A DNA stretch of 64,000 nucleotides from Phaeosaccion multiseriatum (GCA_965112735.1 OZ218951.1:4960001-5024000), one strand, 5' to 3'. Positions 2,309 through 33,646 are shown, counted from the stretch's first letter. The notes: generated by a model not told the origin, from the letters alone. Numbers and translations: made by a program.

Positions 2309-3956
2309 ATGCCGAGGGCCTTGAGCAACGAGGTAATTGTGGAAGCCAGCGTCGCTTCCTGGGTGGGGGGGGGGGGGGGGGGGGGAGTACCGCACTCACA
2401 CAAGTCCCTATATTGTCCTGTTGCGTTGCTCCTTGTGGCAGGCCAGCCGCCTTGAGGAAGCCATCACCAATGGCGAGAATATCCACAGGGTGCAGGCGGC
2501 TGTGAGCGCCCTCGTCGCCAAGAACGGAGGGACGAAGGCATGCTTGGACAAACCCCTCGGTGATGGAGGAGAGCCTGCCCTGCACGGAGCAGTAAGAGCA
2601 CGGAGAGGGGACATCATTGCTCTTTTGCTGCAAGAGGGGGCGTCGCCGAATGCTGCAGAGCCTATACATGGCATGAGTGCGTTGATGTACACATGTTTTT
2701 GCGAGGACGCTGCTGTCGTACAACAGCTCCTCTCTGCTGGTGCTGACGTCAATGCAGTAATGAGAAATGGCTATACGGCTCTCATGACAGCCTCCCAGGA
2801 AGGGGCCGTTGTGGTGGTGTGCAAGCTGCTCTCCGCCGGTGCCAGGGTGGACTTGGCTACCAGTGGGGGTGTGACGGCGTTGCTCCTCTCCTCCGAGGAA
2901 AGGCATCATGCTGTGGTGCAGCAGCTCCTAGCGGCGGGTGCAGAGGTGGACCGGGCAAATATGAAGGGGGAGACAGCCCTGCATGTAGCCTCACAGAGAG
3001 GACGGGAAAGAGTGGTGCAGCAGCTGCTCTCAGCCCGGGCGGAGGTCGATAAGACAGATTCCGAAGGCGTTACGGCCTTGCTATTGGCCTCCCAAAAAGG
3101 GCATCATGCGGTGGTGCAGCAGCTGCTGTCGGCCAGGGCTGATCCCAACCAAGTGGATGAAAGAAATGCAGGAGTCACCCCCTTATTGGTGGCCATAGAC
3201 AAGGGGCACGACAGGGTAACGCACCTACTGCTGACCTCCGGAGCCAATGCGAATTTGCCGGCCCACGACCCATGGTTTCCGCTTGGTATAGCGAGCCAGG
3301 AGAACCATGGCCTTATAGTGGAGCAGCTCATCACAGCCGGCGCTGACCTCGAAAGCCGTAATGGTGAGCATGGGAGAACGGCATTGATGATAGCGTGTAT
3401 GAGAGGGCACAGAGGCATTGTGCGGAAGCTGCTCAGGGCTGGGGCAGAGGTGGATGCGATTGATGGCGATGGGTTTGGAGCGATACAACTTGCATGTACC
3501 AAGGGCCATGCTCGTGTCGTGGAGGAGCTCATCTCAGGAGGTGCTGACGTGGAGACGTGGAGTGAAGACGGGTTCACAGCTTTGCTCAGAGCTGCTGCGG
3601 ATAACCATGAGGCAGTGATCCGTGTGCTGCTGTCTGCAGCTGATCCTGACAATGAGGGCACTATCGGTGTTACTCCCTTGTGTTGTGCGGCAGTAAAAGG
3701 CCACAGCGGGGCGGCGCTGGAGCTGCTCTCAGGAGGAGCCTCACTCTCAAAGGCTCTGACAAGAGCGCGAATGGATGGCGATATAGCAGCGATGGAGTTC
3801 CTTCTGGCCGCGGACAGACAGCACTTTGCGTCACAGAGCGCGTTGGACCTGATGCGGGGCACTGACCGTCTCTTTGGCAAGGAAGGGAGGCTGAAGGTGT
3901 CGCAGAGAGAGGTTAGCCCTGAGGTGCTGCAGGAGGTGGCGGAGGAGATGGCATGA
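2309..3956 (+). CDS. Ankyrin-repeat protein, paralog 1 (12 repeats, about 512 aa); exons 2309-2332, 2442-3956
   Basis: Repeated GxTALxxA..GH..VV.QLL.AGA.VD. An 8-codon first exon MPRALSNE with a phase-0 GT-AG intron matches the other two paralogs. Confidence 0.93.
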
Positions 3957-4135
3957 TGAAAGGGGCACCTCTCATGGCATGCAGTGTGGATGTAAGGGCG
4001 GAGGGAGGGGAGACTGGTGATGGCCTGTGTTGATTGAGTTGAGGACGAGGGAGCAAAGGTCGAACTACCTCATCGGCCGCACTCCTCGCAGCGGGGGGCT
4101 TGAGAGGGCATTACAGGGCGGCTGCTGTATCACCA

Positions 4136-4172
<37 letters not shown>

Positions 4173-4963
4173 ACCCTTCAAGCAGGACGATTCGGGGTTA
4201 GAGGGGCCTGCTATCCACCACACAGGCACAGTCTTGGGTAAATATGAAATGGAAATAATGTGATGTGCTCATTTTAATTTTAAAATTCATGGTTAAAAAA
4301 AAAAGGTACGAATGATTCACCGTTCCTTCCCTTCCCTCTGGTTCCCCCTCTCTCCTCCGGTGCCTCCCCTCCCCCCCCCCCCCCCCCTTTACCCCACCCC
4401 CCACTCTCACTCCTTTTGTTTGTTCGCTTACGTCTTGCCTGGCTTCTCTTCGAAACAAAGCGAAAAGAAACGTACTGTGTGTGGCTCTGAGAGTGGCTCT
4501 CTTCAAAATCGTTTCGAGTCTGTCCGTCGTGTGAGTCCATCCGTGTCGTATGCCTTGACAAGGTACGTTCAACACGACGCCAATCGATTTCCCATCACCC
4601 CCCGCGTGTCGACATGACCACGAACACACGCACGCGGTCGGACCGAACCTCTTCCCTCACCTCCCCTTCCCTCCCTTGCCCTCTCTTCCCCTCCTCCCTT
4701 CTCCCCTCTCCCCTCCCCTTCCCTAATGCCACTGGATGGCACTCCACGACCATTCCCATCCTCGGAGAGGGAAGGAGTAAACAAGCAAGCAAGCACTGTA
4801 GATGGCGAAGTGATTGTAGGCCCGTCAGTCAACCGAGAGGTGGAGCAACTTGTCTGCTTGACGCCCCTACCCCATGCCATGCCGGCAGGTCCCGTCCCGT
4901 CCCATCCCGTCCCGTCTCGTCCCTCTGAGTCAAGTCTCGCCTTCGTTCCTGTCCCTTTGTTGC

Positions 4964-7432
4964 TCATTGGTCACTCGGGGCGGACTCTGTCTCCATCTCA
5001 TCCGCTGCAGCTGCTGTTGTATCACCAACTGCCGCTGCTCCCTTCTCTTCTCCCTCCTTGCCCTCCTCCGCCGAGGGGACCGTTTCATCCGCCGCCGGAG
5101 CACCACCATCCGCAGCCGCCGGAGGTACCTCTCCCTCCTTCCCCTCCTTGGCCCCCTGTTCCTCCTTCCCCTCCCCTCCCTCTCCTCCTTCCTTCCCCTC
5201 CCCCTCCTTCCCTTCCCCTGCCTTCTCCTCCCCGGCCGGCGGTGGGGTGGGCGTAGCGGGCTTAGGCTTGGGCTTGGGTTTGTTCATAATGGGCTTACAC
5301 AAGGCGTCAAGAGCGTTCTTCTTCTGCTTGATGTCCTTGATGGTGAAGCAGGGATCCTCGCAGTCCTTCATGGTGCTCTGCTTGTTTTGGTTGTCGTACA
5401 GCCATGCCAGGGCCGCGTCTGCCTCCGTTCGTACCTTGTCCGTCTCCTCGTCGGAAATGTGTGAGTACGCCTGTTTGTATAGTCATTTGTTTGTTTGTTT
5501 GTTTGCACGTGCGTGGGTGTGGGTATGTGGTTTTGGTGTGGGCGTGTGGTTGGGATTGGGTGGTGTTGGTAAAGCGGCCATGGCAATGACAGACAAAAGG
5601 GAGAGACAGGACAGCACAACAATCAACACACACACACACACACATGTGCTGTGAACCAGCCGACACCACCACCACCACCTCCAGCAGCAGCAGGCTTCTT
5701 CTCCTCTCCTGTCTTCCCTTTCAGGCACCCACTCACACACCCACACCCATACACACGTACACACACACACCCCACCCACCCACACTCACTACCCACGTAC
5801 CATCCCACCCACGCACCCACACCCACCCATTGACTTACCTCGTCCTGGCTGTTGGCGAAGGTCTTGTACGTCTCCGCGGTCTCCCTGAGGACGCTCGCCC
5901 CCGTCTGCCTCTGACTCTGCTCCGTCTTTCTGTCCTCAATCCTATTGCCCGGCGTCTGCAACTCCTTCAGCTTGGACGAGTACACCGACTTGCTGCTGTC
6001 GAACCCTTCGTCCGAGTAAAGCCACTCCTCGGCGGCCTCGAGAGCAGTGGTGAGCGATGCCGCCTCGGACTCCGAAGCGAAGATCTTGAGGTCGCCCACT
6101 AGACGGTCTCGGAAACTGTAAATGTACGACTCGAGCTCGTTGCGCTTGTCGGCCGTCTCCTTGAGGATTCGATCCTGAAAGTGGGTGTGGAATTGGGGTT
6201 GGGTGAGGATAGAGGGAGGAAGGGAGGGGGGGAGAGGGAGGGAGGGAGGGAGAGAGGGACGGGGAGGGAGGGACGGGGAGGGAGGAAGGTGTGGGAAGGA
6301 GAGCAGAGGAGAGAGGGAGAGAAAAGAGGAAGGGGGAGATAAGAGAGCAGGGGAGAGGTATTGGGCGGGGGGAGGGTACCTCCCTCCCTTCACCCCTCTA
6401 CCCCCCCTGACTCCAAGGAGCCTTGTGCGGCATACCGCGTGCCTTTCCCGCCCGCCGTACGTACGTACCTGCTGCGCCATCTTGGCCTCAGCCTCGTGGA
6501 ACGCGTCCACTTCCTGCTTGCTCAGGCGCCCGTTGCTCGTGTCCACCATCAAGTTCACCTTCCTAAACTTCTTCTTCATGACAGGCTTAGGCTTCTCCTC
6601 CTCCTTGGCGGACTCGGCGGCGAAGCTGGGGGGCTCCACATCCATGGCCTGAAGGAACAGTCGCCATTTGCGGGGGTGTGGTGTGTGTGCGTGAGTGCGT
6701 GCGTGCATACGTACGTGTGCGTGTGTGTGTATTTCATTTGGTTGGTGGGTCACGGAGTGCGTCGTTGGGGTGGTTAGGTTCGAGGGCAAGGAGGGGCGAC
6801 AAAGAGTAGAGAGAGTGGTGAGAGAGCAAGTAGAGTGAGAAAGAAATGACGTGTACATTGCCCGTACGGATACACCGAGGTTGAGTTCAACGGGCGCGCA
6901 AGGAGAGCGGGGGGGGGTTCAGCGGCAGCAGCAGGAGCAGCAGCAGGAGCAGCAGGAGCAGCAGCAGGAGGAGAAGGAGGGGGAGAGGGAAAACTGCAGA
7001 AAAGCGGCTCACTCGGCAGCGGCAAATACAACAGTCGGCCATCTGCTCATCTCGCACGCACGCACTCACATCTCCCTCGGGCGCCCCTCCTTCTGGGGCT
7101 GGCGCGTCCGCGCTCTTCGCCTCTCCCTCCGCCTCGCCCTCCTTGCCCTCTGCCCCTGCTGTGGCCGACTCCTCTCCTCCCTCCTTCTTGTCCCCCTCGC
7201 CGGTCTCCGCTCCTCCTTCTGGTGCTGCTGCTCCATCTCCTTCCGGAGTCGGGGGGGTGGTGGTGGCGGTGGCCGGAGTGCCAGGAACGAGGTCAGGAAC
7301 CACCTCCTCCTCCTCCATGATTGCTTCCATCATCTGTGCGCTCTGCACGCTGAGCACCCCGTTGATATCGTGCTTGACGTTGAGACGGATGGACACGGGT
7401 TCCAAACTGGGGATCTCCAGAATCCTGTGTGC

Positions 7433-7483
<51 letters not shown>

Positions 7484-10400
7484 GGAGAGAGAAGAGAGGA
7501 AGAGAGGAAGAGAGGGTGAAGGGAGGGAATGGGGGAGGACATTAGCGTTTCCGTGGTCTATTTCGGACGAGGCGGCAACGGAGGCAGAGCATGCCGCTCC
7601 CGTTTTTTTCAGTTTCACGAAAACACAACAACCCGGGGGGGGGCCGCCCAACCCCCCAACCCCCAAAGCCCCAACCCTCCAGACCCCCAACACCACTCAC
7701 TTGAACTTGGCCAGCTCCCTGCTCGCCCCGGGGGGCAGGTCCTCCGCGCACTCCTCGTCGTACGAAGCCACGACCTCAAACGGCTTGTTGCGCTTGAAGT
7801 TGATCCTCCTCGTCTTGGGGGTGGGAGCGTTCTTGGCGAACAGAACGGCCGTGGTAGCGTCGCTCTCGGCAGCAGCGGCGTCCGGTTTGTCTTCGGCCGC
7901 TTCTGGCTTCTCGGCGGCGGCTTTGGTGGTTGTTGTGCAGGGGAGGGGAGAGAGAGGAGGAGGTTGGGGGCAGGGCGGGGGAGCAGAGGTGGTGGCGGTA
8001 TGGTGACAAGGGTGGAGAGAGAGAGAGAGAGAGAGGAAGTTAGAGACTTGCAGGCATGCAGACATGCGGACTGAGCAAGAGCGAACGAGAGAGCGAGAGC
8101 GAGAGAGAGAGAGAGAGAGAGAGAGCCAAGAGTACAAGACCATATGACTGGAGACAACAGAGAGAGATCAGACTGCGAGCCTTCGACTGCGGCGTGTCAT
8201 CAGCGAGCTGCATGCTTGCCGACGGGTTCTAAGTGTCAGCAACAAATGCAGCCGACTCAGACGTGTGTACCTGGTGTCATCATGTCCCTCTCTGTGCCCC
8301 CCCCCCCCCCCTCAATTCACCACATTCACTAGCTTATGTATGTACCATCGACCACTTGCTACGGATCGTCCCTTTGAATTTCACCTTTGAACGTGACACC
8401 TTTGCAAACAAGCAAATAGAAAGTGTTCAGAGTAGACAAGAAGGCAAGGTCACGTACCATCGGTGTCCATGGCGTCCTTGGCGTCTCCCTCGTCCCAACT
8501 GAGGCGAATCGGATACGGCACGGCATCTGTGATGCTGAAGTCCTTCACACGGAAGCGAGACGACAGAATCGCACACTGGCATGGGGGAAGGATAGGAGGG
8601 GGGGGAGAGAGAGAGAGAGAAGGGAGGGAGGGAGGGAGACAGAGGAAGGGAGGGGGGTCAGGGGGTAAGGAAGGGCAAGCCCACACACACGCACACGCAC
8701 ACACGCACGGGTTGCTGAGTATCGAATCGAATCAGTCCTCAACCCCACCCCTTTCCCCCCTCCCTGCCTCCCTGCCTCCCTGCCTCCCTCCCTCCTCAAC
8801 CCCCTTCCTCCCTCACCCGCTCTACGCCTCAAACTCAAACTCACCTGCAGCGCCGCCCCTCTGGCGACACTCTCATCGGCGTTGAGAGTAGTGCTCAAGC
8901 CCATGTTGAGCGCGTTGACATCGGTGCCGAGGATGCCTGCCATCTTTCGCTTCACCATGGGCACGCGAGTGCTGCCGCCCACAATCTCCACAGCGGCCAG
9001 GTCCGTCGGGGCGAGGCCTGCCTCTGCTAGCACCCTCGATATGGGAGCCTGGGGGGGTGGGCGGGGTGGGTGGGTGTGGGGTGGTCGGATGGGTAGGTGG
9101 GGGGGGGGTGTTGTGGGTGAGATTGAGTCCAGTATGAATGTGAGTGTGTTGGACAAGGCCAGCCAGGCAGTGCGGGCCCAGCAAGGGAGGAAAGGAGAAG
9201 AGGGAGGAACGAAAGAAACCCCCTCCTCCCCCCCCCCTTCAGCCCCCCCACTCCCCCTCCCCTCCTCCCCTCCGCCCCTTCCTCCCTCGTCTCACCTCAA
9301 TCCTGTCCACGAGAGGTCCCAAAATCTCCTCAAACTGCTCCAAGCTCAACCTCGAATTGTAATCCGTATCTTCCACCAGGCACTCCACATTCACCACGGT
9401 ATCTGTGACACCAATCGGACTCAGATTCTTCTTGGCCTTCTCCGCGGCATCTAGCAGCTTCAGCATGGACTTGGGCTTGCCCATTGGGTCCCCCATGGTC
9501 GGGTTTTTGGCGGCAAAGTCCTTGGCCATCCAACAGGCGACTGCGTAGTCAAAGTCTCGCCCCCCGAGGTTGCGGTCAAAGGCCGTGGCTTTGACTACGA
9601 GAGACTCCTGTGTTTGTAGTAGGCAGCAGGGACAGCAGAAGTAGCAGTAATGGTGGCAGCAGCAGCATTTGCAGCAGCAATAGCACCAGGAAGGGCGGGA
9701 AGGGGGTGGGAGGGAGGGAGGGAGGGAGACAGGGAGAGAGGGAGGGAGGGAGGGAGGGAGGGGGATTGGGTCAGGGGCCTGCCGTATGCCCTTGGCTCCG
9801 TGGCGTTTGGTTTCCACCACTCTTCCACAGTCCTCCTTTGGTTCCATTTTGATCGACATCGATAGCGGCGTATTTGCTCAGGTGTAGTCAACAAAAGACT
9901 CAAACACGGCATATCCTTCCCTCCCCTTCCTTCCCTCTCCTTTTCTTCTTCCCTTCCCCTCCCTCACCCTCCCACCACCCACCCCTGTACCACCAACACC
10001 CGTACCTGCACATAGTCAACGAGGGTAGCGGTGAATCCGCAGTGCCCGAGGTCCATAAAGAGTGTGTGCTGAGGCACCTCTTTGTCGAACAGCTGCTTGG
10101 CCGACTTGTAGATTCCGTAGGCAAGAGCCGTGGCGGTGCCCTCGTGCACAAGCCGAAGACAGTTGAGGTCGGCAATTTGACAGGCGGAGAGCATGGCGCA
10201 CCGCATACTGTTGTGTGTGATTTGGGTTGGTTTGGTTGGGGGTGTGGGTGAAGGGGAGGCAAGAAGAGATGGATGGGAGTAAAGAGTGTGTAAGAGAGAG
10301 AGAGAGAGAGGTGGGGAGAGAGAGAGCACAAGAGCTACTCGATCCAGCACATCACACCCTCCCATCCATCCATCCACCACCCCACCCAATCCATGCACCC

Positions 10401-11025: not shown

Positions 11026-11095
<70 letters not shown>

Positions 11096-13457: not shown

Positions 13458-13609
13458 TGTGACGAAGGCCCTGAGGCTTCGCCGCCTCTGAGGCTTCGCC
13501 GCCTCTGAGGCTTCGCCGCTAACCAAATTCGGTGCGGTTTCTTGTCACCTCAACTGGCTCTGCGTGCGCGGGTGGAGGGAGCAGCAGCAGTAGCGCCGGC
13601 AGAGACCAT

Positions 13610-13708
13610 ATGATGATGACTGAGAAGGGGCGGGACCACCAGGAGCAGCAGCACCGCTGGCAGCACCAGCAGCAGCAGCCGCAGTACCACCACCCCACTT
13701 TCGCCCGT

Positions 13709-13767
<59 letters not shown>

Positions 13768-14585
13768 CCAGCACCTGCAGCAACTGCAGCAAAGCCAGCT
13801 GGTTCAGCAACCGCCCCAGCCGCAGCAGTGTAGCGTCCAAGGGTGCCAGAAGACCGCCAAGCACCGCGGCGTGTGCATCCAACACGGGGGAGGGGGGGGC
13901 AGGAAAAACACATGCCGTGTCGAGGGCTGTGAAAAGCATGGCATCACCGAGGGGCTGTGCCAAAAGCACTACAGCGACACGCAGGTGGGCGGGAATGGGG
14001 GGGGCTCAGTGGGCTCGGTGGGGTTGTCCACCGGCGCCAGTGGTAGTGGCAACAGCAGCAGCGGGGCGCCACCACCACTGCTCTTCTGGTGCACGTGGGG
14101 GGGTGGCTGTGGCGCGAGCGTGAGCGGGCCAGGTGCCATGTGCCCCACCCACCGGGCCGAGTTCAATCTCTGCAGCGTGGAGGGGTGTACAAAGGCGGTG
14201 CGATTGGGCGGCGTGTGCGTGCAGCACGGCGCGGGGATGCGCAGGTGTAAGGTAGACGGCTGCAACAATCATGTGATACGCGGCGGGGTGTGCATCCGGC
14301 ACGGGGCCTTCAACAAGCGCTGTTCCATTAAGAACTGCAACAAGATTGCGAGGGAAGACGGTAAGTGCAATGTGCACCACGTACCAGGGCCTGTGGCGCC
14401 AGTGCCATCCTCGTTGCCACTTGCGCCACCACCACCAGCCATACGACGACCAGCAGTGCCAGTGGCAGCAGCAGGAAGAGGGGGCGGGGGGGGACTGCCA
14501 CACCCGCACGCCACGACATACCACTCTCCGCCGCCACCTTCACAACTCGTAGCGCTGACGGCAGCGACGGCGGCAGCAGCATCCT

Positions 14586-14618
<33 letters not shown>

Positions 14619-15253
14619 TGGCAGCACCAGGGATGTCAGCATCGGCAGTAGCGGTAGCAGACGACAACTGGGACCAGGGAGGCGGGGAAGATGGGTTTGG
14701 ACCAGGGGGTATCAGAGGGCGAGTGTTTGATTCTTGCTACGCCGTCCGCTCATGGCCAGAGCAACAACGCAGCTCCTACCCCCCTGCCCCCCCCACTTAC
14801 TACCACACTCATCATGCTGCCCCTGTGCCTGCTTCGGTACCTGCTCCGGTGCCTGTGGCTTTTAGTGGTGGTGGTGGTGGTGATGGTGGTGGTGGTGGTC
14901 AAGGTGAAGCCATGGCGGCTAGTGGTGGTGATGTGATAAGATTCTATTCAGATGGTGGCCCCGTCGACGGCCCCCATTTCTCCTCCTCTTCTCCTCCTCC
15001 TCCTCCTCCTTCTGGCTCTTTCTCTAGTTCTTCTGTCCGAGGTACGAAGCGCGGCAGACTGATGGCAGAGGCCTTGTACGAGGAGGAGGAAGAGAGACGG
15101 AGAAGGCATCACAGCGTTGGCAAGGGCCGTGAGTATCCTGCAAGCGCGGCCCTTAGTGCCGGTGGTGGTGGTGCCGGTGGTGGTGGTGGTGGAGGCACTG
15201 GGAAGGCCGGGGAGGAGAGCGAGGAGGACGACGAGGTGGTGCAGATCTTGTAG
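13610..15253 (+). CDS. Single-exon polyQ protein with WRKY19-like C-x4-C-x9/10-C-x2-H(G) zinc-finger repeats (putative transcription regulator)
   Basis: Six repeats such as CSVQGCQKTAKHRGVCIQHG, CSVEGCTKAVRLGGVCVQHG, CKVDGCNNHVIRGGVCIRHG. First in-frame ATG at 13610. No WRKYGQK domain. Confidence 0.88.
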
Positions 15254-16148: not shown

Positions 16149-16182
<34 letters not shown>

Positions 16183-16225
16183 GACTGCTCTGCTGCTCCC
16201 TTCCCCCTTTCCCCCTCTTCTAACA

Positions 16226-19369: not shown

Positions 19370-22300
19370 ATGATGAGGAAGAGGAAGGCAGTCTTATGGA
19401 CCACCACAGCAGTTGCCGCAGCAGCAGTTGCCCACCTGCATCTGCTGGAAGGCTGTAGAGCATTTACCCCGCCTGTGTCGCTGCTCCAGGAGCCTGGCCT
19501 AAGAAGGGGAATGAACCGAGGCCACCCCGGACAGCAGCGGACTTCTTTTCGCCAGCGAAGCACGCCTACGGGAGGAGTGGGGATGGGGGCGGAGGAGGGA
19601 GGGGGCGGTGAAGGAGAGGGTGAAGATGTGGGAGTGGCAGAGGAGAGCGAGGCGGAGTATAAGAGACGGATGGAGATCGCGGGCAGGCAAATGGGTCTGC
19701 GTGCGGACGAGGTTAGCGCTGCCGCTCTCCGCGAGCGTGCAGAGAAGATTATGCTCGATGCGGAGCGGATAAAGAGGGAGAATGAGGAGGCTCGCGCGGC
19801 GCTGGACAAGGTCAGTGGTAGAGACTCTTCGTCGGGGGGGGGGAGGCGGGAAGAAAGGGTACTTTTTCAGCACTGTCCTTGTCACTTGTTTCTTCATCTT
19901 CTTTCTGCTCCAACATGTCTCATCGATTGTGCATCTTTGTGCTGATGGGTGGGATTCCTTCCTGCTCCCTGGTGCTCCTCTTGTGCCCTGTCCTGCCTGC
20001 CTGGCACGTCCATAGGAGAATCTCGTGCGATTAGAGGCCAAGAAAAAGAAGGAGAAAGTCGATAAGCCCCCACCTCCACCAGAGGACCCACGTCTCGCGG
20101 GTCTCCGGGCCACGTGCTTAGCTTCTTACGCCCCTAGACTCTCTCAGCGGATAGACCTGGAGGAGTGGCGAGGGAAGGCGGTGTCGGAGCTGGACAAGAG
20201 GGGGCAGGGTACTAGGGCAGCAGAGGAGGTGATGAGTGGCCTGGCAGCGTCTACACTGGCGGCCTTTGCAAAGGAGAGCACTCTCGTCATGGGAGATGGA
20301 GAGGCGGTTCGGACGAAGCTGCAGTTGCTGGGGGAGGCAGGGGGGCTCTCGAAAGACGACCAGAGACGGGCTTACAAGCGCTTCACCACGCTTCTCCCCA
20401 GGCTGGGTTTTCAGCTGTCGGAGACCGACAGCAGGCAGGGCGGTGGAGAGGGCGGGGGGGCAAGAAAGAGCAGCAAGGCAGAGGAGGAGGCGACCGCTAC
20501 TGGCGCTGCTGCCACTGCTACTGGCGTGGAGGACAGGTTTGTCGAAGCGGAGCGCTATGATGACTCGGATCTACTCCGCTGGCTCTACACGGATGATGAA
20601 GAGAACACACCGGGGCAGGGCATGGAGCGCTTAGCCCAGACCTTACTCTCCATGGTGCCTACCTTGGTCGTCATTGACGAACTGGACAGCAGCCCCTACG
20701 CCAGGCCTGTGGGCATTATCAAGTCGCTGAGGCGATCCTACGGCCCACGAAGGACGGGAAACGTAGTGGGAGAGCTAGTGCTCAAAGCTTTCTTGTCGGA
20801 GCGACTCAAGACGTTGCTCGCTGCTCGACCTTTGCTGGCGGCGGAAGGGGGCGAGGCAGGAGGGTCAGGGTCAGGGTCCACCAGCAGCAGCGGTGGCAAG
20901 TACGAGGCTCTCCAGGCGGAGTTGTTGGGCAATGCCTACTGGCGCTGGCAGAAGGCGGCACTCGAGAGGGAGAGAGAGGCACAGCAGATTAGCGGGAGAG
21001 GTGGTGAGGAGCTGACGGTGGACCCTTCCAGGTGGGGGCTTGGGGATGAGCCGCTGCCGGAGTTGGCTGCGTTGGTGAATCTGTACTGGCTGGAGCTCAA
21101 CATGGCCAACCCAGAAGCAGTGAAAGCAAAAGCAGGAGGAGGAGTAGGAGCTATGGCCAAGGCGTTTGGAGGCGGCATGAAGGGCAGCAACTGGGGGGAG
21201 GGGAAGGAGGGAAACGAGGAGAAGGGAGCTGCGGACAAGGAGAATCAGACTTCAGGCCTACAGGGAAAGAGCGCAGATCAGCTGCTGCAGCACCAAGAGA
21301 ACGGGTTGCGATTCAAGGAGTTGCTTGAGAATCGCAGGCTGGCCGTCGACCTTGTGCGGCTCAATGACACGGTGCTCAACGACGACACCGCCCTCAAAAC
21401 CATTCGATGCATGCAAGTGGGCTTTGATAACTACTTGTCACGCAAGGATGAGGACATTATACCGCCAATGTCTGAGTCCGTGCTACGGCGGCTGAGAACG
21501 GAGGTGCTGGGGCAAGAGGACTTGTTCCCAGGTAAGGTGGTGCTGAAGCACTATCGTCCGAGCATTGCGGTCATTCGAGGGGACTTTCAAGTGTCGTGGG
21601 CCAAGGGCCAAATGCAGAGATTTATGGAACTGTCGAGACAGGCGGAGAAGGAGATGGGTGCTTTCGCTCTTGATAACGATGAATTTGAGAAGGAATTAGC
21701 GGACTATTGTAGGAACACGGAAGGAGGAGAAGAAAGAGAGGCCATCGGAGTAGATTCAAGGGCAGTGGTGGCAATCGGCTCGCAGAAGCGGAGCGCGGAG
21801 ACTTCGTGGGAAGCCGTGTTGAAGCGATTGGAAGACACCGGCCTCTCCAAGGATGTGCAGCTCTTCCTCGTGAAGGACGATGCTCGCAAGCGGGGCAAGG
21901 CCGAGGCGCAGCTAGGACTGGAGAACGATGAGCGGCTTTTTACCGATATGATATCCAACTTTGTGTCGGACTCAATGGCCATTGTTGCCGTCTCTCGGAA
22001 GGCCCAACCCAAACAATGGGGCAAGACCCCGGCCACGCTGCTGCTGAGTCTTGTGGGCATGTACTCGGTCTTCGCCACGGCTATTGGGTCCTTCGCCCTG
22101 AACGACAAGTTCGCACAGAGCATCGTCACGGATATGGACCTCAGCGTTCTCCCACAGGTGCTGCCCTTGGTCGGCTGTGTGGCCGGCTTGCAGGCCATTC
22201 ATGACTCGGGCCACTTGGCGGTGGCGGCTGTCCAGAGGCTGCCTGTCAAGCTTCCTCGCGCGGTACCGGGCTTGGACATCGGTCTCATGCCCACTATTGT

Positions 22301-22967
22301 GGACCCCGCGGGATATGCCAAGGACAGAGACTCACTCACGGACTTTGCCCTTGCAGGGCCCGTTGCCGGGTTTACGGCGTCTGCTGCCTTCTTGTTGTCG
22401 GGCCTCGCCCTCACCGCTGGCGCCGACCCAGAGAGCCTGCAGCTCTTCCCCAAGCTCGCGCCGGCCCTCCTTGAGAGTAGTGCGGTGGTGGGCAACATCG
22501 TCAACGCCTTCTTGCCCGGGGCCAACCTGGGCGTAGCCGACCTCGTAGCCCCGGTGGCCCTTCACCCCTTGGCCGTGGCGGGGGTGTTTGGCCTGTGGAG
22601 CAACACGCTCGCGCTGGTGCCCTACGGACGGAGCGACGGAGCGAGGGCGGTGCGGGCGTCCCTGGGCCTGCCGGCAGACGTGCTGTTTGCGCTCCCACTG
22701 CCCTCTCTGTGGGTCTTGTATCAGACACTCTTTAGCAGCAACGAGATGCTCGCGGCCAACTGTGTCATCCTCTTCTTCATGTACCCGGGGGAGGGTGTGC
22801 TGGTTCAGAACGACGCTCCTGTAGTCAGCCAGTGGCGACAGGCTGCCGTGTTGTTCTCCATGGTTGTGCTATCTGTGATGTTGATTCCCATGGGCGAGAC
22901 AAGCTTCCTGGGTGGGGGCGGGGCGGCGACCCTGCTGCAGAAGGCCAGCCAAATCGGTGGGTTGTAG
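19370..22967 (+). CDS. Plastid-targeted EGY-like M50 (site-2) intramembrane metallopeptidase homolog, about 1130 aa; exons 19370-19810, 20016-22967
   Basis: Signal peptide ending LEGCRA-FTPP (ASAFAP-like). C-terminal multi-TM domain with AIHDSGH, DFALAGPVAG, LHPLAVAG, LVPYGRSDG. Phase-0 GT-AG intron. Confidence 0.82.
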
Positions 22968-27400: not shown

Positions 27401-29018
27401 ATCCCCCGGTGGGCAAGCTCGCCGAGGAAGTCTGTGTTGTCGCATACCAAATCGGTAATGGCGTCTTTGAGGCACCGCGTTCCTCGCACTGCCAGAATGA
27501 TACTGAGCAGCAGTTGGTGATACAACAGCAGCAGCAGCAGCAGGAGAAGGAGGAGGGGGAGCAGGAGCAGGAGCCGGAGGAGGAGGAGGGGGACGAGGAG
27601 TAGCAGGAGGAGAAGGAGAAGGAGGAGGAGGAGGAGGAGGAGGAGGAGGAGGAGGAGGAGGAGGAGGAGGAGGAGGAGGAGGAGGAGGAGGAGGAGGAGG
27701 AGGAGGAGGGGGGGGGGGGAGAAAGGGCCGGGTGGGCGGAAGAGTGTGCTTGGTTTCCCTCTGTTCGTTGCTCCCTTCCTTCCTTCCTTCCTTCCTTCCT
27801 TGTTTGTTCCTCCTTCGCCTCACAATGCGTTCCGTACCTTTGGCTGCTGTGGTCTATCGCGATGAAGTAGCCCGGACGAAGGTAGTCGGCATCGAGCTTG
27901 ACCTTCAGAAGAGCCTCTTTCTCAACGCCCGTATGCTTTAAAATGCACCACTCGTTCAAGTTCTTCCTGTGTGTTTGTTGTTCAGTCCAATCCTCGGTGT
28001 CAGTCATTCACTCCGTCAGTCACTAACTTAGTCGATAGTTGGTGTCAGTTTTGTCAGTCAGTCACCTGCGCAGCTCCTTGGACCGCTTGATTTCATCGAG
28101 GGGGGGCCACTCCGAGATGGGGATAATGTTAAGTCCCTTAAGCATCACCAGCCCGTAGGATGAAGAGGCGAAGCGCACGAACCGAGCGGCCATCTCCACA
28201 GCATCATCACTGGCGACAAGGCGTTGCTCCTTCCCTTGCTGCTGCTGTTTGTGACCCGGGTTGGGGGTGGGGAGGACGTGGCGTAAGCTTGCTAGAAGGC
28301 GGCCCGGCCGACTCCGTCGACGGCCCGTGGTTGTGGTGCTCGGCTCCTTGTCCCGCCCAGCTGCAGCAGCGGAGCTGGCGGCGATGGCGATTGCCTGGAC
28401 CAAGAGAAAGAGAGGGCGCAGCGGATGATTAGAGAGAAAAAAAAAAATAGGGAGAGAGAGAGAGAGGTTTAGTGAAGGGTCCTCTGCTGCTATTTGTCTG
28501 GCACATTCCGTACCTCCCTCTCGTGAATAGTGCTGAGGATGAGGAGGTTGACGAGGAGAGGATATTTGTTTTGATTGGGAATATCCTTAGCCAGTGCCTC
28601 AGACATCTCCACGATTGCCGACAAGGAGTCGTCGAGACGCGGACTGATCAGCTTCCCTGTAGGGTGGATAGGTTCGTCGTCGGGCAGGAGGAGAGACGAG
28701 AGAGAAAATGAGGGGGGGCTGGGTGGGGGGAGAGGGGCTTGATGAAAAGAGTCGGGACGCGCATCCCCAGAGAGAGGGAGGTATCTCAGATGACTTACGC
28801 TTCAGCGCTTGGGTCATTCGATGCCCTCTGATGGCCCTCCACATCTTCTTCACTAGCCCTGAACCTGCTGCTCTTGCCGGTGGTGATGCTGATGGTGATG
28901 GTCGTGCCACCTTCGGTGCCGAACAAGTCGAAGCTCCCGCACTCCCTCCCCTGTTTTTGGTGTTTGTTATCACAACCAGCGATGCGAGCCCGATAAAAGC
29001 GGCAGACTCCAACCTCAT
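24408..29018 (-). CDS. Class 3 lipase (diacylglycerol-lipase-like), 9 exons (29018-28799, 28656-28515, 28394-28066, 27966-27838, 27502-27364, 26889-26758, 26460-26406, 25955-24831, 24545-24408)
   Basis: PGYFIAIDH, IILAVRGT..DAITDL, AHRGM, LVLTGHSMGGGVA (nucleophile elbow), CYAFAPP, VFRHDVVPRL, LQIPGTIYH, AVDHWPSAY. Exon phases join. Confidence 0.9.
24650..24821. repeat. (TCAC)n tetranucleotide array, about 43 units, at the 5' end of the last lipase intron
   Basis: Directly visible; reads (GTGA)n on the transcript. Confidence 0.97.
27055..27152. repeat. Degenerate telomere-like 7-mer array (CCCTATA/CCCTAAA/CCCTACA) in a lipase intron
   Basis: About 13 degenerate units, including an exact CCCTAAA. 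Confidence 0.6.
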
Positions 29019-29277
29019 GCTCTTCCTCCCTCCTCCTTCGCCCCTCCTCAAGCCAATCCGTGCTGGAAGCGCTCCGGAGGAGGGGGTTATTTACAAGAGC
29101 CAGGGTTGAAAAAAGCATCGAAAAAAATCCGGCCATTATTGACTTATTATACCCCCCCTTGATTATCCGTCCCCCCTTTCATCCATTTAGGTAAGGGTTT
29201 TGAGTGTGGTTTCGTGTCGAGAGCAGAATGCCCTTTCCCCAGGAGTTTTAATAGGCCACAGCCTTTTCCCCGGTACC

Positions 29278-30746
29278 ATGCAGAGGACCTTCAGTAGCGA
29301 GGTGGGTTCATACGCGAAGAGTTTTTACTTTCCTTTCCTTTCTTACTCCATCTCCTCTTCCTATTGCAGGCTGCTCGCGTGTATGAAGCCATCGCCAATG
29401 GCGAGAGCGCCAAAAGGGTGCAAGCGGCTGTGAGAGCCCTCGTCGCGAAGAACGGCGGGAGGAAGGCATGCTTGGACGAGCCCATCAAGGAGGACGGATG
29501 GTTTGCCCTGCAATTAGCTGTGGAAGAGAGGAGGGGTGATATCATTGCTCTTCTGCTGCAAGAGGGGGCGTCGCCGAAAAGTGTGAACCCATCAAATGGC
29601 ATCACTGCTTTGCATGCTGCCTGTGTTACAGAAGATGCTACTCTTGTGCAACAGCTCCTCTCTGCTGGTGCTGACGTCAATGCAGTAGCGAGCAGCGGAC
29701 TTACGGCTCTCATGGTGGCCTCCTTTGCTGGGGCCGTTGTAGTAGTGCATAAGCTGCTCTCTGCGGGCGCCGCCGTGGACGTCGCCGACAGTACTGGCAA
29801 TACGGCGTTGCTCTACGCCTCCGAGAGTGACGATCATGCAGTGGTGCAGCAGCTGCTAGCGGCGGGTGCAGAGGTGGACTGGGTAGGTGAGAAAGGACGT
29901 GAAAGAGTGGTCCGGCAGCTGCTCTCCGGCGGCGCCGAGGTCGACAAGGTAAATGTCGACGGCTCTACACCCTTGTTGCTTGCCTCCGTGAACGGGCGTC
30001 ATGCGGTGGTGCAGCAGCTACTATCGGCCAACGCGAATATCGACGGCGTGAATCTGGAGTCCCCGCTTTGCGCGGCAAGCCAGCAAGGACATGGCATTGT
30101 CGTGGATCAGCTCATTACGGCCGGCGCTGACCTCGAAAGCCGTCATGGTGAGGATGGGTGGACAGCGTTGATGGAAGCGTCTTTGGGAGGGCACAGAAGC
30201 ATTGTGCGGAAGCTGCTCAGGGCTGGTGCAGAGGTGAATGTATTGAGTGGCGACGGGGGTGGAGCGATACACATGGCGTCTCAGAGTGGCCATGCTCGCG
30301 TCGTGGAGGAGCTCATCTCAGGAGGTGCTGACGTGGAGATGCTCGATGTTAGAGGCTACACAGCTTTGATATATGCTACTGCGAATGGCCATCAGGCAGT
30401 GATCCGTGTTTTGCTCTCTACGGGGGCTGATCCTGACAATGAGGGCGACGATGTCCACAGTAAATCGCCCTTGTTTATTGCGGCAGAGCAGGGCCACAGT
30501 GGGGTGGCGCTGGAGCTGCTCTCAGGAGGGGCCTCACTGACAAAGGCTTTGACAGCAGCACGAAAGGCTGAGGATGCAGTTGTTGAATTCCTCCTGACTA
30601 CGGACAGGCAGCACTTTGCGTCACAAAGCGCGTTGGACCTGATGCGGGGCACTGACCGTCTCTTTGGCAAGGAAGGGAGGCTGAAGGTGTCGCAGAGAGA
30701 GGCTAGCCCTGAGGTGCTGCAGGAGGTGGCGGAGGAGATGGCATGA
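29278..30746 (+). CDS. Ankyrin-repeat protein, paralog 2 (10 full repeats plus a half repeat, about 466 aa); exons 29278-29301, 29370-30746
   Basis: Ankyrin consensus; first exon MQRTFSSE; same C-terminal tail as paralogs 1 and 3. Confidence 0.9.
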
Positions 30747-31070
30747 TGAAAGGGGCACCTCTCGCCTGCGGTGTGGTCAGGGCGTTGGGAAGGTGGGGTA
30801 GCGAGGGTCTGAGTCGATAATAATGACGGATGAAGATGAGGTGATACCCCACTGTAACTACAGCGATGCTGGGGGCTTGACCGGCATTGTACTGTTGTGT
30901 GAGGGCGAGGAGGAGAAGGGCAAGCACAAAATACTCTTCTTCATTTATTCATTTACGTCTCGCTCATGGTATGGTTGAAGCCTCACACGCACGTTTCCTG
31001 TGGTTCGCAGCTGGCCTAGCTTTGCTCTTTCTGCGTTGATGCGGGTGCTTCTGCTTGCTCATCACTCTGC

Positions 31071-31237
31071 TTCTCTTGCCGGTGGTGATGGTGATGGTGA
31101 TGGCTGGTCCTACCACCTTCGGTGCCGACCGAACAAGTCGAAGCTGCCGCACTCCCTCCTCTATTTTTGGTGTTTACTAGCTCTCACAGCCAGCGATGCG
31201 ATGCGGGCCCGATAAAAGCGGCAGACTCCAACCTCAT
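31071..31237 (-). pseudogene. Truncated, frameshifted duplicate of lipase exon 1
   Basis: MRLESAAFIG identical to the lipase start, then a 5-bp duplication (CGCAT) gives PASHRWL-stop. Homology ends at the duplication junction. Confidence 0.85.
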
Positions 31238-31555
31238 GCTCTTCCTCCCTCCTCCTTCGCCCCTCCTCAAGCCAATCCGTGCTGGAAGAGCTCCGGAGGA
31301 GGTTATTTACAAAGCCAGGGTGAAAAAAATACTTACAGACAAAAATCCGGCCATTATTTATTGACTTAACCTGTACCATTGACATAAACATTACTCTTAG
31401 TGTTTTCAATATTTCTCCCAACCCCCCTTTTCTCCCTCGCCCTTCGTTTCTCGGCAGTGCTGCGAACCGGACGACAGCTCTTCTTGTAGAGGGCATCCTT
31501 GCGCAGATTCTGACCCACCACACACTCAACAGGCCACAGCCTTTTCCCCGGTACC

Positions 31556-33646
31556 ATGCAGAGGACCTTCAGTAGCGAGGTGGGTTCATACACGGAGAGT
31601 CCTTCGCCTGTCCTGTCCTCGAACTCTCCCTCCCTCACCCCACTCCCTCCCTCCCTCCCTCCCTCCCTCCCTCCCTCCCTCCCTCTCCTCTTCCTACTCC
31701 ATCTCCTTTTCCTATTGCAGGCTACTCGCGTGTACGAAGCCATCGCCAGTGGTCAGAGCATCCAAAGGGTACAAGCGGCTGTGAGGGCCCTTGTCGCGAA
31801 GAACGGCGGGAAAACGGCATGCTTGGACGAGCCCCTCGATGAGAGAGGGTTTCCTCCCCTGCACGTAGCGGTGGAAGAGAGGAGGGGTGATATCATTGCT
31901 CTTCTGCTGCAAGAGGGGGCGTCACCGAAAAGTGTGAACCCATCAAATGGCGTCACTGCTTTGCATGCTGCCTGTGTTACAGAAGATGCTTCTGTAATGC
32001 AACAGCTCCTCTCTGCTGGTGCTGACGTCAATGCAGTAGCGAGCGATGGACTTACGGCTCTCATGGGGGCCTCCTCTGTAGGGGCCGTTGTGCTGATGCA
32101 CAAGCTGCTCTCTGCGGGCGCCGGCGTGGACTTCGCCGACAGTAATGGCGATACGGCGTTGATCTACGCCTCCGAGGAAGGGCATTATGCAGTGGTGCAG
32201 CAGCTGCTAGCGGCGGGTGCAGAGGTGGACTGGGAAAATATGAAGGGGCGCACAGCCCTCCATAGAGCCTCAGATGGAGGATATGAAAGAGTGGTCCGGC
32301 AGCTGCTGTCAGCCGGCGCGGAGGTCGATAAGACAGATTCCGGAGGCGTTACGCCCTTGGCATTGGCCTCCCACGAAGGGCATCATGCGGTGGTGCATGA
32401 GCTACTATCGGCAGGTGCAGAGGTGGACTGGGTGATTGTGAAAGGGAATATGGCGCTCCATCAAGCCTCACGTGGAGGACGTGAAAGGGTGGACCAGCAG
32501 CTGCTCTCAGGCGGCGCGGAGATCGACGACGACGAGGAAAATCTCGAAGGCTCTACACCCTTGTTGTTGGCCTCCTTCAACGGGCATCACGCCGTGGTGC
32601 AGCAACTGCTCTCAGCCGGCGCGGAGGTCGACAAGGCACATTCGATGGGCGGTACGGCGCTCCATCATGCCTCACTTGGAGGACATGAAACGGTAGTACA
32701 AGAGCTTCTTTCAGCCGGCGCAGAGGTCGACAAGCCAGATTTGGAAGGCCTTACGGCCTTGTTATTGGCCTCCCAGGAGGGGAGTCATACCGTGGTGCAT
32801 GAGCTACTATCGGCCAACGCGAATCCCGACCACGTGGATGAAAGAAATATTGACGGCACCACCGCCCTGTTTATGGCCGCAGGACACGGACATCACAGGG
32901 TCACGCAGCTGCTGTTGACCTTTGGCGCAGATGCGAATTTGGGAGTCCGCGACGGATGGACCCCGCTTTGCGCGGCAAGCCAGGAAGGACATGGCATTGT
33001 GGTGGATCAGCTCATCACAGCCGGCGCTGACCTCGACAGCCGTAGCGATGAGTGGGGGAGAACTGCGTTGACGGAAGCGTCTGTGAAAGGGTACAGAAGC
33101 ATTGTGCGAAAGCTGGTGAGGGCTGGGGCAGAGGTGAATGGGTTGACTAGGGACGGGTATGGAGCGATACACTTGGCGTCTTCAAATGACCATGCTCGTG
33201 TCGTGGAGGAGCTCATCTCAGGGGGGGCTGACGTGGAGATGCTGACTACTCAGGGGTACACAGCTGTGCTGCATGCTGCTGCGAATGGCCATGGGGCAGT
33301 GGTCCGTGTGCTGCTGTCTGCGGGGGCTGATCCTGACAATGAGGGCGACAGAATCCACAGTAAAACGGCCTTGTTTCTTGCTGCCGTGGAGGGCAACAGC
33401 GGGGTGGCGCTGGAGCTGCTCTCAGGAGGGGCCTCACTGACAAAGGCTCTGACTCAGGCACGAAGGTATGGCGATGCAGTTGTTGAATTCCTCCTGACTA
33501 CGGACAGACATCACTTTGCGTCACAAAGCGCGTTGGACCTGATGCGGGGCACTGACCGTCCCTTTGGCAAGGAAGGGAGGCTGAAGGTGTCGCAGAGAGA
33601 GCTTAGCCCTGAGGTGCTGCAGGAGGTGGCGGAGGAGATGGCATGA
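31556..33646 (+). CDS. Ankyrin-repeat protein, paralog 3 (16 repeats, about 649 aa); exons 31556-31579, 31721-33646
   Basis: Ankyrin consensus; first exon MQRTFSSE; conserved tail. Confidence 0.93.
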   Translation: MQRTFSSEVGSYTESPSPVLSSNSPSLTPLPPSLPPSLPPSLPLLFLLHLLFLLQATRVYEAIASGQSIQRVQAAVRALVAKNGGKTACLDEPLDERGFPPLHVAVEERRGDIIALLLQEGASPKSVNPSNGVTALHAACVTEDASVMQQLLSAGADVNAVASDGLTALMGASSVGAVVLMHKLLSAGAGVDFADSNGDTALIYASEEGHYAVVQQLLAAGAEVDWENMKGRTALHRASDGGYERVVRQLLSAGAEVDKTDSGGVTPLALASHEGHHAVVHELLSAGAEVDWVIVKGNMALHQASRGGRERVDQQLLSGGAEIDDDEENLEGSTPLLLASFNGHHAVVQQLLSAGAEVDKAHSMGGTALHHASLGGHETVVQELLSAGAEVDKPDLEGLTALLLASQEGSHTVVHELLSANANPDHVDERNIDGTTALFMAAGHGHHRVTQLLLTFGADANLGVRDGWTPLCAASQEGHGIVVDQLITAGADLDSRSDEWGRTALTEASVKGYRSIVRKLVRAGAEVNGLTRDGYGAIHLASSNDHARVVEELISGGADVEMLTTQGYTAVLHAAANGHGAVVRVLLSAGADPDNEGDRIHSKTALFLAAVEGNSGVALELLSGGASLTKALTQARRYGDAVVEFLLTTDRHHFASQSALDLMRGTDRPFGKEGRLKVSQRELSPEVLQEVAEEMA

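Follow-up and report, generated by a model that had tools for sequence, protein, structure and literature searches.

Ankyrin-repeat paralogs with a fast-evolving binding face and a constant C-terminal tail in an ochrophyte alga

Introduction

Diversifying repertoires of repeat proteins recognize non-self in plants, fungi, and jawless fish. In plants and jawless fish these repertoires are built from LRR domains, and in fungi from WD40, TPR, and ankyrin (ANK) repeats on an NLR chassis. ANK arrays are also found in poxvirus ANK-PRANC proteins and animal ASB proteins, where the array is followed by a short constant C-terminal module and cullin complexes are recruited. Fungal NOD-like receptors have highly conserved ANK, TPR, and WD40 repeat domains, carry a NACHT or NB-ARC domain together with an N-terminal effector domain, and owe their diversity to alleles or to repeats at a small number of loci (Dyrka et al. 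2014, PMC4986451). In brown algae, LRR-ROCO and NB-ARC-TPR proteins are candidate immune receptors that diversify by shuffling single-repeat exons and bear GTPase or NB-ARC signalling domains (Zambounis et al. 2012, PMC3341825; PMC11378527). The phaeovirus EsV-1 encodes ANK proteins as well, and ANK remnants are present in viral inserts of Ectocarpus (PMC2373305).

Here we describe three ANK genes in a window of 64,000 nucleotides (the whole stretch of DNA analyzed) from the ochrophyte alga Phaeosaccion multiseriatum. The three belong to a large ANK family, probably a lineage-specific one of cytosolic binders. Like the LRR-ROCO and NB-ARC-TPR proteins, this is a large, fast-evolving repeat-protein family of an ochrophyte lineage that can be proposed as a pathogen-recognition repertoire; unlike them, it keeps the whole ANK array in one exon and would diversify by point substitution, unequal crossing-over, and conversion. 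In contrast to fungal NLRs, the family lacks a NOD domain, its diversity lies among at least 60 paralogs, and the constant module that it has to set against theirs is an orphan 47-residue C-terminal tail. We favor, as the likely overall explanation, a diversifying repertoire of ANK binders with a constant tail, shaped by duplication, crossing-over, conversion, and selection on the binding face. This relative of the brown-algal and xanthophyte lineages may then have a comparably large, fast-evolving repertoire made from ANK repeats alone, and a fast face with a fixed tail is the pattern that would be expected of a recognition-protein repertoire in a photosynthetic stramenopile. Should the tail prove to feed into a defined pathway, the family would represent a new receptor-adaptor architecture and a natural counterpart of a DARPin library, with dozens of ready scaffolds and faces. 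It also offers a clean system for the joint action of duplication, unequal crossing-over, gene conversion, and selection.

Results and discussion

Three ANK genes with a common framework and tail

The window holds three intact ANK genes, all on the + strand: W1 (2309-3956), W2 (29278-30746), and W3 (31556-33646), with open reading frames at 2337-3956, 29364-30746, and 31556-33646, respectively. They are identified as ankyrin-repeat genes by Pfam Ank_2, with E-values of 1e-72 (W1), 8e-58 (W2), and 6e-125 (W3) and scores of 193-409 bits against a cut-off of 27.3. Each gene appears to open with an 8-codon micro-exon followed by a short GT..AG intron, as predicted from the DNA sequence. The features are as follows:

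2309..2332, + strand: W1 exon 1 (MPRALSNE), a micro-exon of 8 codons with a GT donor directly behind it (predicted splicing)
2333..2441, + strand: W1 predicted intron (GT..CAG), with a putative in-frame acceptor directly 5' of the conserved N-terminal motif
2442..3956, + strand: W1 exon 2, with a 12-repeat ANK array, the 47-residue tail, and the stop codon
3813..3953, + strand: W1 constant C-terminal tail, 47 codons
28874..29140, + strand: W2 distal 5' flank, where the tandem-duplication unit starts; it matches 31076-31358, upstream of W3, at about 95% identity
29278..29301, + strand: W2 exon 1 (MQRTFSSE), the same as W3 exon 1
29302..29369, + strand: W2 predicted intron
29370..30746, + strand: W2 exon 2, with the ANK array (one repeat is two fused), tail, and stop codon
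30603..30743, + strand: W2 constant tail
30770..31071, + strand: W2 3' flank, common to W3 only
31556..31579, + strand: W3 exon 1 (MQRTFSSE), an 8-codon micro-exon
31580..31720, + strand: W3 predicted intron, CT-rich, stop-free, its length a multiple of 3
31721..33646, + strand: W3 exon 2, with a 16-repeat ANK array, tail, and stop codon
33503..33643, + strand: W3 constant tail
33663..33964, + strand: W3 3' flank, twin of 30770-31071; homology, and with it the tandem unit, ends at 33964

Because the predicted intron of W3 is free of stops and a multiple of 3 in length, the W3 open reading frame reads through it; all protein analyses were done on the exon 2 sequence. The micro-exon motif and GT donor lie upstream of 24 of the 38 family genes described below. 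Judged by eye, no stretch of the predicted N-terminus (the micro-exon and the polar helical cap after it) is hydrophobic. Short-read unitigs from public DNA runs, possibly of the same sample as the assembly, show 0 differences on the unique parts of W2 and W3, and the W2/W3 locus is therefore no assembly artefact. Contigs of these DNA unitigs cross the predicted intron unspliced and cover intergenic DNA.

The three genes have the same framework DNA and differ in the codons of the beta-turn and inner helix, as a first-pass annotation of this DNA had claimed: an exact copy of a 39-nt block lies at each of 2721, 29649, and 32000 (chance expectation 0), and the peptide triplets named there are all found in W1, W2, and W3, where they align column for column. 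Its repeat counts of 12, about 10.5, and 16 hold for W1 and W3; in our HMM parse W2 has about 11-12 repeats, one of them fused or partial. At the C-terminus the three genes share one 47-residue non-ANK tail.

An AF2 model (pLDDT 88) folds as a regular ANK solenoid; designed consensus ANK proteins and DARPins come closest to it in fold among PDB structures, with a TM by target of 0.77-0.84 and 31-40% identity. Pfam shows only Ank families in W1, W2, and W3, with no NACHT, NB-ARC, or signalling domain, and the 810 bp between the W2 stop and the W3 start leave no room for a NOD domain. With Ank-only Pfam content, an 8-codon micro-exon as the start, and this 810-bp gap, the genes do not have the central NACHT or NB-ARC that defines NLR/STAND proteins.

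A large family with variable arrays

A genome-wide collection based on the tail, as the first-pass annotation had proposed, yielded a large family. The tail picked out 235 candidates in the 67-Mb genome, with at least 150 scored matches. Some 60 matches are close (at least 74% identity), most of them within 4.1-5.7 Mb of contig C2. Roughly one in four of the close matches is in a short open frame or contains stops. From 40 fetched stretches we recovered 35 further full genes, which together with W1-W3 make a set of 38 with open frames of 288-1007 aa. The selection and haplotype figures rest on these 38 genes, all paralogs within one genome; distant tail subfamilies (45% identity; C13, C15, C6, and C9) lie outside this set.

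Across the 38 genes the C-terminal module and tail are colinear, and across the family the number of repeats per protein ranges from 6 to 26. Each protein has an N-terminal module that is fixed, then a central array built from a 66-residue unit of two repeats, by which it grows and shrinks, then a C-terminal module of about six repeats, again fixed, and last the constant 47-residue tail. We found 34-37 distinct turn/helix haplotypes among the 38 genes. With 34-37 of the 38 patch haplotypes unique, the shuffling of a limited stock of cassettes is ruled out.

Binding-face codons change faster than the framework

Entropy per repeat position is high only at positions 1, 2, 3, 5, 9, 10, 13, 14, 17, 32, and 33, a profile which agrees with the first-pass reading that the variable positions are the canonical ANK binding face, as randomised in DARPins. 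Six positions randomised in DARPins (2, 3, 5, 13, 14, and 33) were set a priori. When GY+F3X4 was fitted per partition by maximum likelihood (ML), omega was 1.59 at these six positions (likelihood-ratio test of omega=1: 2dlnL 16.3, p=5e-5), 1.00 at positions 1, 9, 10, and 32, 0.44-0.45 in the framework, and 0.26 in the tail. In 17 independent pairs analyzed by NG86, dN at the DARPin positions was 0.44 compared to a framework dS of 0.18, a ratio of 2.48 (bootstrap CI 2.12-2.98), with the excess present in 16 of the 17 pairs. For positions 2, 3, 5, 13, 14, and 33, dN over framework dS was 1.45, 2.65, 2.70, 3.26, 3.45, and 1.08, respectively. Per-position dN/dS was 1.5-3.5 at positions 1, 2, 3, 5, 9, 10, 13, and 14, and no framework position reached 0.9.

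Measured against their own NG86 dS, the face codons have an omega of about 1.0; the excess over 1 comes from the interleaved framework synonymous sites, the four-fold control, and the ML estimate. Clean four-fold divergence is 0.153 for face codons and 0.139 for framework codons. These values are equal and thus show no local mutation excess, which rules out a raised local mutation rate or templated hypermutation at the face codons. The ENC of 52.9 indicates a codon bias at which synonymous sites are a fair yardstick. The site class set beforehand therefore has an omega above 1, which is diversifying selection as seen in a comparison of paralogs with recombination present, and as estimated by per-partition ML and pairwise NG86.

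These numbers could also be read as relaxed constraint with concerted evolution, in which the face drifts neutrally, without positive selection, and the framework is homogenised by conversion and purifying selection. The omega of about 1.0 against own dS, the ML omega of 1.00 at positions 1, 9, 10, and 32, the values near 1 at positions 32 and 33, and the gene conversion active in the family are all consistent with this reading. We nevertheless consider it unlikely, because face and framework codons are interleaved in every 33-codon repeat, so that conversion tracts give both one history, and face dN still exceeds framework dS 2.5-fold in 16 of 17 pairs. Moreover, ML rejects omega=1 at the a-priori positions, the clean four-fold sites mark the high face dS as an artefact of multiply hit codons, and the ENC speaks against depressed synonymous rates. 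As part of the overall explanation, positive diversifying selection is the probable driver of amino acid change at positions 1, 2, 3, 5, 9, 10, 13, and 14 of the concave face, and selection directed at the face would give almost every copy a face of its own.

The first-pass annotation had named two outcomes that would count against it, namely evenly spread substitutions with surface dN/dS below 1, and decay of the copies. Neither is seen: the face stands at 1.5-3.5 and the framework below 0.9, W1-W3 have intact frames, and omega in framework and tail is well below 1. That the family consists of untranscribed, decaying duplicates is therefore barely credible. The quarter of close tail matches with short frames or stops fits decay, but long frames are intact in the three window genes and the 35 others, framework and tail have omegas of 0.44 and 0.26, and the micro-exon and splice donor are conserved.

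The resulting pattern is DARPin-like in design, with a constant, consensus-like framework and variation concentrated at positions 2, 3, 5, 13, 14, and 33 (the last near neutral) and also at 1, 9, and 10. DARPins are synthetic libraries with 2-3 internal repeats, whereas the algal family is natural, has 6-26 repeats, and adds variable positions 1, 9, and 10 and a tail; the comparison is one of design analogy, not of family membership.

Tandem duplication and probable patchy gene conversion

Of the 291 aligned bases in the 3' flanks of W2 (30781-31071) and W3 (33674-33964), 2 differ, the number reported at first pass for a flank of 300 bp. For this pair the framework synonymous divergence is 0.17 and the flank divergence 0.006, while other gene pairs show the reverse, with a coding dS of 0.02 and flanks that are merely 82% identical. 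Since divergence in the flanks and in the coding sequence is uncoupled in either direction, the flank contrast reflects tandem duplication and patchy gene conversion, not selection alone. The first-pass claim of rapid diversification thus stands for the face (omega 1.59, 2.5-fold over framework dS), and its use of the flank as a clean neutral yardstick does not.

We infer that the locus is a mosaic produced by tandem duplication and ectopic gene conversion, with selection on top. The family would have evolved by tandem duplication (W2 and W3 being one pair) and by unequal crossing-over in the central array, while patchy ectopic conversion would keep the framework, and above all the tail, alike. 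In line with this, two paralogs (L031 and L038) are 100% identical across about 160 codons and then diverge. When the diverged parts of W2 and W3 are painted in 90-nt windows, the best match switches among paralogs, at no more than 80-95% identity, which is suggestive but not decisive; no recent donor (at least 97% identity) for these parts was found among the 38 sampled genes. A PHI-like test gave no distance-dependent recombination signal (incompatibility 0.383 for sites up to 100 nt apart, 0.379 when permuted). It is the mosaic divergence, and not this test, that points to gene conversion.

ANK genes of viral origin, taken for instance from giant viruses, or a selfish ANK family could spread in a genome without any role in host recognition. 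The algal family's nearest clusters in a feature search are ANK proteins of Nucleocytoviricota, at scores (0.85-0.86) that random sequences often reach, and the ANK genes of EsV-1 and remnants in Ectocarpus (PMC2373305) provide a precedent. We regard such an origin as very unlikely: the predicted spliceosomal micro-exon and intron are conserved, W1, W2, and W3 adjoin ordinary host ORFs, and framework and tail are under purifying selection. Non-tandem copies have unrelated flanks and no shared transposon-like ends, and the tail and C-terminal module have no relative among 2.9 million viral contigs.

An orphan tail as a putative common output

No relative of the tail was found in a profile search of 1.84 billion proteins, a word search, a PDB sequence profile search, or metagenome contigs. 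Pfam gave no match to the tail at E up to 10, F-box, PRANC, SOCS-box, and BTB included; PF00646, PF12937, and PF09372 were absent with both 79- and 47-residue tail queries at this threshold, and PF07525 (SOCS box) gave no tail match. A feature search returned nothing at a meaningful level, the SOCS-box cluster lead being weak (0.84) and under the meaningful range. The AF2 model extends the cap into the tail as one long helix, after which come a disordered linker and a short, 11-residue amphipathic helix.

These results bear on the idea that the proteins are substrate receptors of ubiquitin ligases, their tail being a degenerate handle of F-box/PRANC, SOCS-box, or BTB-like type for recruiting a cullin complex. 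The layout fits: the ANK-PRANC proteins of poxviruses and others, and ASB proteins, also combine a variable ANK array with a short constant module at the C-terminus. The SOCS-box lead points the same way, below the meaningful level. Unlike ANK-PRANC and ASB proteins, the algal tail has no F-box-like, PRANC, or SOCS-box signal and is a predicted helix, linker, and helix; the PDB profile search was empty. A 47-residue helix-linker-helix is also too small and simple for the BTB/POZ fold of about 95-110 residues that ANK-BTB proteins carry, and the 14 Pfam BTB matches in the genome are all at other loci. On balance, we hold a ubiquitin-ligase role to be rather unlikely. It is a narrower version of the adaptor idea that follows, not opposed to it.

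Under our preferred explanation of a diversifying ANK repertoire with a constant tail, the family would function as a germline repertoire of variable target binders, and the same tail on each binder would lead to one common putative partner, in an adaptor logic of variable recognition and constant output. Target binding, docking through the tail, and any part that the family may play in conflicts with viruses or parasites are what we infer from the patterns above. More speculatively, and with considerable doubt, the family may be a germline-encoded, intracellular, NOD-less ANK recognition repertoire of at least 60 (perhaps more than 150) binders that feed through one tail into a single effector or degradation pathway, in conflict with viruses or intracellular parasites.

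Finally, the tail is conserved at the nucleotide level, with 97-100% identity across 160 nt and decay within 30 nt past the stop, the conserved block beginning about 160 nt ahead of the stop and ending about 25 nt beyond it. Four-fold divergence is 0.054 in the tail compared to 0.139 in the framework. RNA structure as the cause of this silent-site conservation is unsupported by a fold z-score of -0.44. The silent-site-conserved block that encodes the tail might have an extra role, either as a handle for family-wide regulation (e.g. a small-RNA target) or as an anchor for conversion.

A large ankyrin family with a variable number of repeats

The window holds three ankyrin (ANK) genes, W1, W2 and W3, and no further ones. 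Each matches Ank_2 in Pfam (241, 194 and 409 bits, respectively), and no Pfam domain besides ANK was found in any of them. Their parts are as follows:

2309-2332, + strand: 8-codon micro-exon of W1, then a GT donor
2337-3956, + strand: ORF of W1, intact
29278-29301, + strand: 8-codon micro-exon of W2, then a GT donor
29364-30746, + strand: ORF of W2, intact
31556-31579, + strand: 8-codon micro-exon of W3, then a GT donor
31556-33646, + strand: ORF of W3, intact; its 'M...' frame reads through the predicted intron

The first-pass annotation described the three genes as paralogs that share identical DNA blocks and differ by codon swaps. Both points hold: a 39-nt block occurs exactly at 2721, 29649 and 32000 only (chance expectation, none), and all quoted peptide triplets were found and align column for column. 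Of the repeat counts proposed there (12, about 10.5 and 16), those for W1 and W3 were recovered with an HMM trained on the family's own repeats, and W2 was revised to 12 repeats, including one that is fused and partial. The intron predicted after the micro-exon (109 nt in W1, 68 nt in W2 and 141 nt in W3) has a CAG end that abuts the conserved N-terminal cap, and we infer from the sequence that the micro-exon is spliced to exon 2 in all three genes; the protein analyses refer to exon 2 alone.

The ANK family is large, lineage-specific and varies in repeat number. Collecting it genome-wide by its C-terminus, as had been proposed, with the last 79 residues as the query against the whole assembly (67.1 Mb, 22 contigs), gave at least 150 scored matches among 235 candidates. 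About 60 matches are close copies (at least 74% identical), mostly on contig C2 at 4.1 to 5.7 Mb, a span that includes the window at C2:4,960,001-5,024,000, and roughly 90 are remoter (~45% identical) and lie in clusters on C13, C15, C6, C9 and C3. Of the close copies, roughly one in four lies in a short frame or contains stops.

From 40 stretches fetched around close copies, together with W1, W2 and W3, we obtained 38 full-length genes (288-1007 residues, 6 to 26 repeats). Their N-terminal module has three to four specific repeats, and the central array behind it comprises about 2 to 18 repeats, built from a unit of two alternating repeats (66 residues). A C-terminal module of about six repeat-specific units follows, colinear across the 38 genes, and every protein ends in a nearly invariant 47-residue tail. 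The micro-exon motif and its donor lie upstream of 24 of the 38 genes, where the introns measure 68 to 774 nt, a recurrence that fits DNA-level duplication and selection on the gene start. The clearest array expansion is seen in three adjoining genes (L048, L052 and L053; G000:C9:2560957-2572568, G000 being the assembly itself) with 20-26 repeats each, whose central arrays are a near-perfect alternation of two repeat types.

Diversifying selection on the binding face

We numbered the repeats in the register of designed ankyrin repeat proteins (DARPins; G at position 4, T at position 6). Across 433 repeats, only positions 1, 2, 3, 5, 9, 10, 13, 14, 17, 32 and 33 have an entropy above 3.2 bits; in the framework it is mostly 0.02 to about 2 bits, with positions 18, 21 and 22 intermediate. 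DARPin libraries (those of Binz et al. in 2003) were reportedly randomised at positions 2, 3, 5, 13, 14 and 33, and we used these six as a class fixed in advance, against circularity. Rather than the even spread of substitutions, with dN/dS below 1 at surface sites, that the first-pass annotation had set against its own reading, a maximum-likelihood model (GY+F3X4, one omega per partition, colinear C-terminal module, 38 genes) gave an omega of 1.59 for the six DARPin positions, 1.00 for positions 1, 9, 10 and 32, 0.44 for the other 23 positions, those of the framework, and 0.26 for the tail. Forcing omega to 1 on the DARPin positions cost 8.1 log-likelihood units (p=5e-5).

Pairwise counts (NG86) in 17 phylogenetically independent pairs put dN at 0.44 for the DARPin positions and dS at 0.18 for the framework codons interleaved with them. 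Their ratio is 2.48 (bootstrap CI over pairs 2.12-2.98), and 16 of 17 pairs agree in direction. Codon bias is weak (ENC 52.9), and synonymous sites are therefore a fair yardstick. Position by position, in full-length alignments of 12 close pairs, dN over framework dS is 1.5-3.5 at positions 1, 2, 3, 5, 9, 10, 13 and 14, ~1 at positions 32 and 33 and below 0.9 at all remaining positions. Variation is thus concentrated at DARPin-type positions, as had been claimed, in both entropy and substitution. W2 and W3 differ in the same manner (face dN 0.35, framework dS 0.17, framework dN 0.06).

Raised mutation at face codons might be suspected from their own NG86 dS, which is inflated (0.44). Where four-fold codons share their first two bases, however, the third base differs almost equally in face (0.153) and framework (0.139). 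Mutation is therefore not locally raised, and the inflated value is an artefact of multiple hits in the same codon. Reshuffling of a few cassettes is also rejected as the source of the diversity, since beta-turn and helix patches at five colinear repeats each have 34-37 haplotypes among the 38 genes. Nor can gene conversion alone lift face dN over framework dS: the two kinds of codon alternate in every repeat, and conversion therefore gives both the same history. The binding face is under diversifying selection.

A mosaic history

W2 and W3 are a tandem duplication (units roughly 28874-31071 and 31072-33964). The pair is identical in the micro-exon and proximal promoter and differs by 0.6% in the 3' flank, about 2% in the first two repeats, 3% at tail synonymous sites, about 4-5%, with indels, in the distal 5' flank, and 17% at framework synonymous sites in the rest of the array. 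The near-identity of the 3' flank reported in the first-pass annotation is borne out (2 differences in 291 bases, 30781-31071 versus 33674-33964), but its contrast with the coding sequence is not by itself a sign of selection, given the divergence of the synonymous framework sites. As protein selection cannot raise synonymous divergence, part of the array must have been overwritten since the duplication.

Flank and coding sequence are decoupled in both directions across other pairs of family genes: L054 and L058 have 3' flanks with 100% identity over 544 bp, yet a framework dS of 0.16, and L033 and L035 have a framework dS of 0.02, yet a flank just 82% identical. L031 and L038 agree at all bases for ~160 codons, beyond which most of their differences fall at face codons. 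When W2 and W3 were painted in 90-nt windows, the best-matching paralog changed along the gene; no donor above ~95% identity was found among the sampled genes. A PHI-like test was flat, with 38% of site pairs incompatible at every distance. Either very short tracts of conversion or abundant recurrent change could give this result, which is not formal evidence of recombination. The history of the family is mosaic, and we read it as birth-and-death evolution within which unequal crossing-over and patchy ectopic conversion would have shaped the genes.

The assembly at W2 and W3 is backed by unitigs with 0 differences on their unique parts, although the sample that was assembled may itself be the source of the runs. 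All five public runs containing this DNA are sets of DNA unitigs, whose contigs cross the W2 intron unspliced and also cover intergenic DNA. Function is indirectly supported by the long intact frames, by conservation of the micro-exon and by an omega below 0.5 in both framework and tail.

A constant orphan tail

Over the ~160 nt that end at the stop, each nucleotide is 97-100% conserved in the 38 genes, third positions included, and conservation is back to background within 30 nt past the stop. The ratio of tail dS to framework dS is 0.45 (CI 0.30-0.66), and all four gametes occur in 21 of 55 informative-site pairs of the 141-nt tail, as frequent conversion would allow. The silent-site conservation is most probably due to conversion; a nucleotide-level function, such as a small-RNA target, may also contribute. 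The RNA folding energy of the region is ordinary (z = -0.44). The tail-coding block (30584-30770 in W2) is present in 38 of 38 genes, and framework four-fold sites of the same paralogs differ at 26%; the block starts with a double stop (TGATGA), and ~20 semi-conserved 3'UTR bases come after.

In an AlphaFold2 model of the last 200 residues (38-gene alignment, pLDDT 88.4), a regular ANK solenoid leads into a long helix that prolongs the last cap (residues 144-176), a disordered linker (177-188) and a short amphipathic acidic helix (189-199). The best Foldseek matches in the PDB, designed consensus ANK proteins and DARPins, cover the ANK part alone. The tail is a constant orphan: no relatives were found by word search of 5.8 billion proteins, by profile search of 1.84 billion representatives, in Pfam at E up to 10, or among PDB sequences, viral contigs and metagenome contigs. 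A feature search gave sub-threshold matches only (giant-virus ANK clusters, 0.85-0.86; a SOCS-box cluster, 0.84). F-box/PRANC, SOCS-box and BTB tails are unsupported for the W1-W3 subfamily by these searches, and the genome's own Pfam BTB matches are located away from the family.

Possible role and known parallels

We infer that these proteins would act as variable binders, each offering the same constant handle to a shared partner, and they may plausibly serve in immunity or against viruses. The closest known parallel comes from fungal NLRs, whose highly conserved ANK, TPR and WD40 repeats are polymorphic in number, evolve in concert and are positively selected on the concave face (PMC4986451); the alga's family is without any NOD domain. 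The nearest phylogenetic parallel is the brown-algal LRR-ROCO and NB-ARC-TPR families, which, in contrast to the family described here, diversify via exon shuffling (PMC3341825).

Other features of the window and genome

Between the ANK genes, a 573-aa ORF (13532-15253, + strand) has three WRKY19-type zinc finger matches (PF24906, E 9e-23) and no other Pfam domains. Two ORFs adjoining ANK genes, 20025-22967 (+ strand, 980 aa) and 34201-35814 (- strand, 537 aa), have no Pfam match and may be lineage-specific genes or chance frames in GC-rich DNA. The extreme GC skew (-0.67) at 48-52 kb is due to a C-rich minisatellite at 47236-52417 (19-bp unit, ~272 copies, 93% matches).

Elsewhere in the genome, light-harvesting-complex genes gave at least 46 matches. 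For one such gene, the top-ranking named relatives come from Chrysoparadoxa australica (52% identity) and Tribonema minus (46%), and diatoms and a brown alga rank next; these genes and their relatives thus indicate a photosynthetic stramenopile (ochrophyte). The light-harvesting-complex genes form regular tandem arrays with ~4.5 kb spacing at G000:C9:474910-521083 and G000:C15:1683723-1700707; the C9 array consists of two opposed blocks, suggesting a large palindrome.
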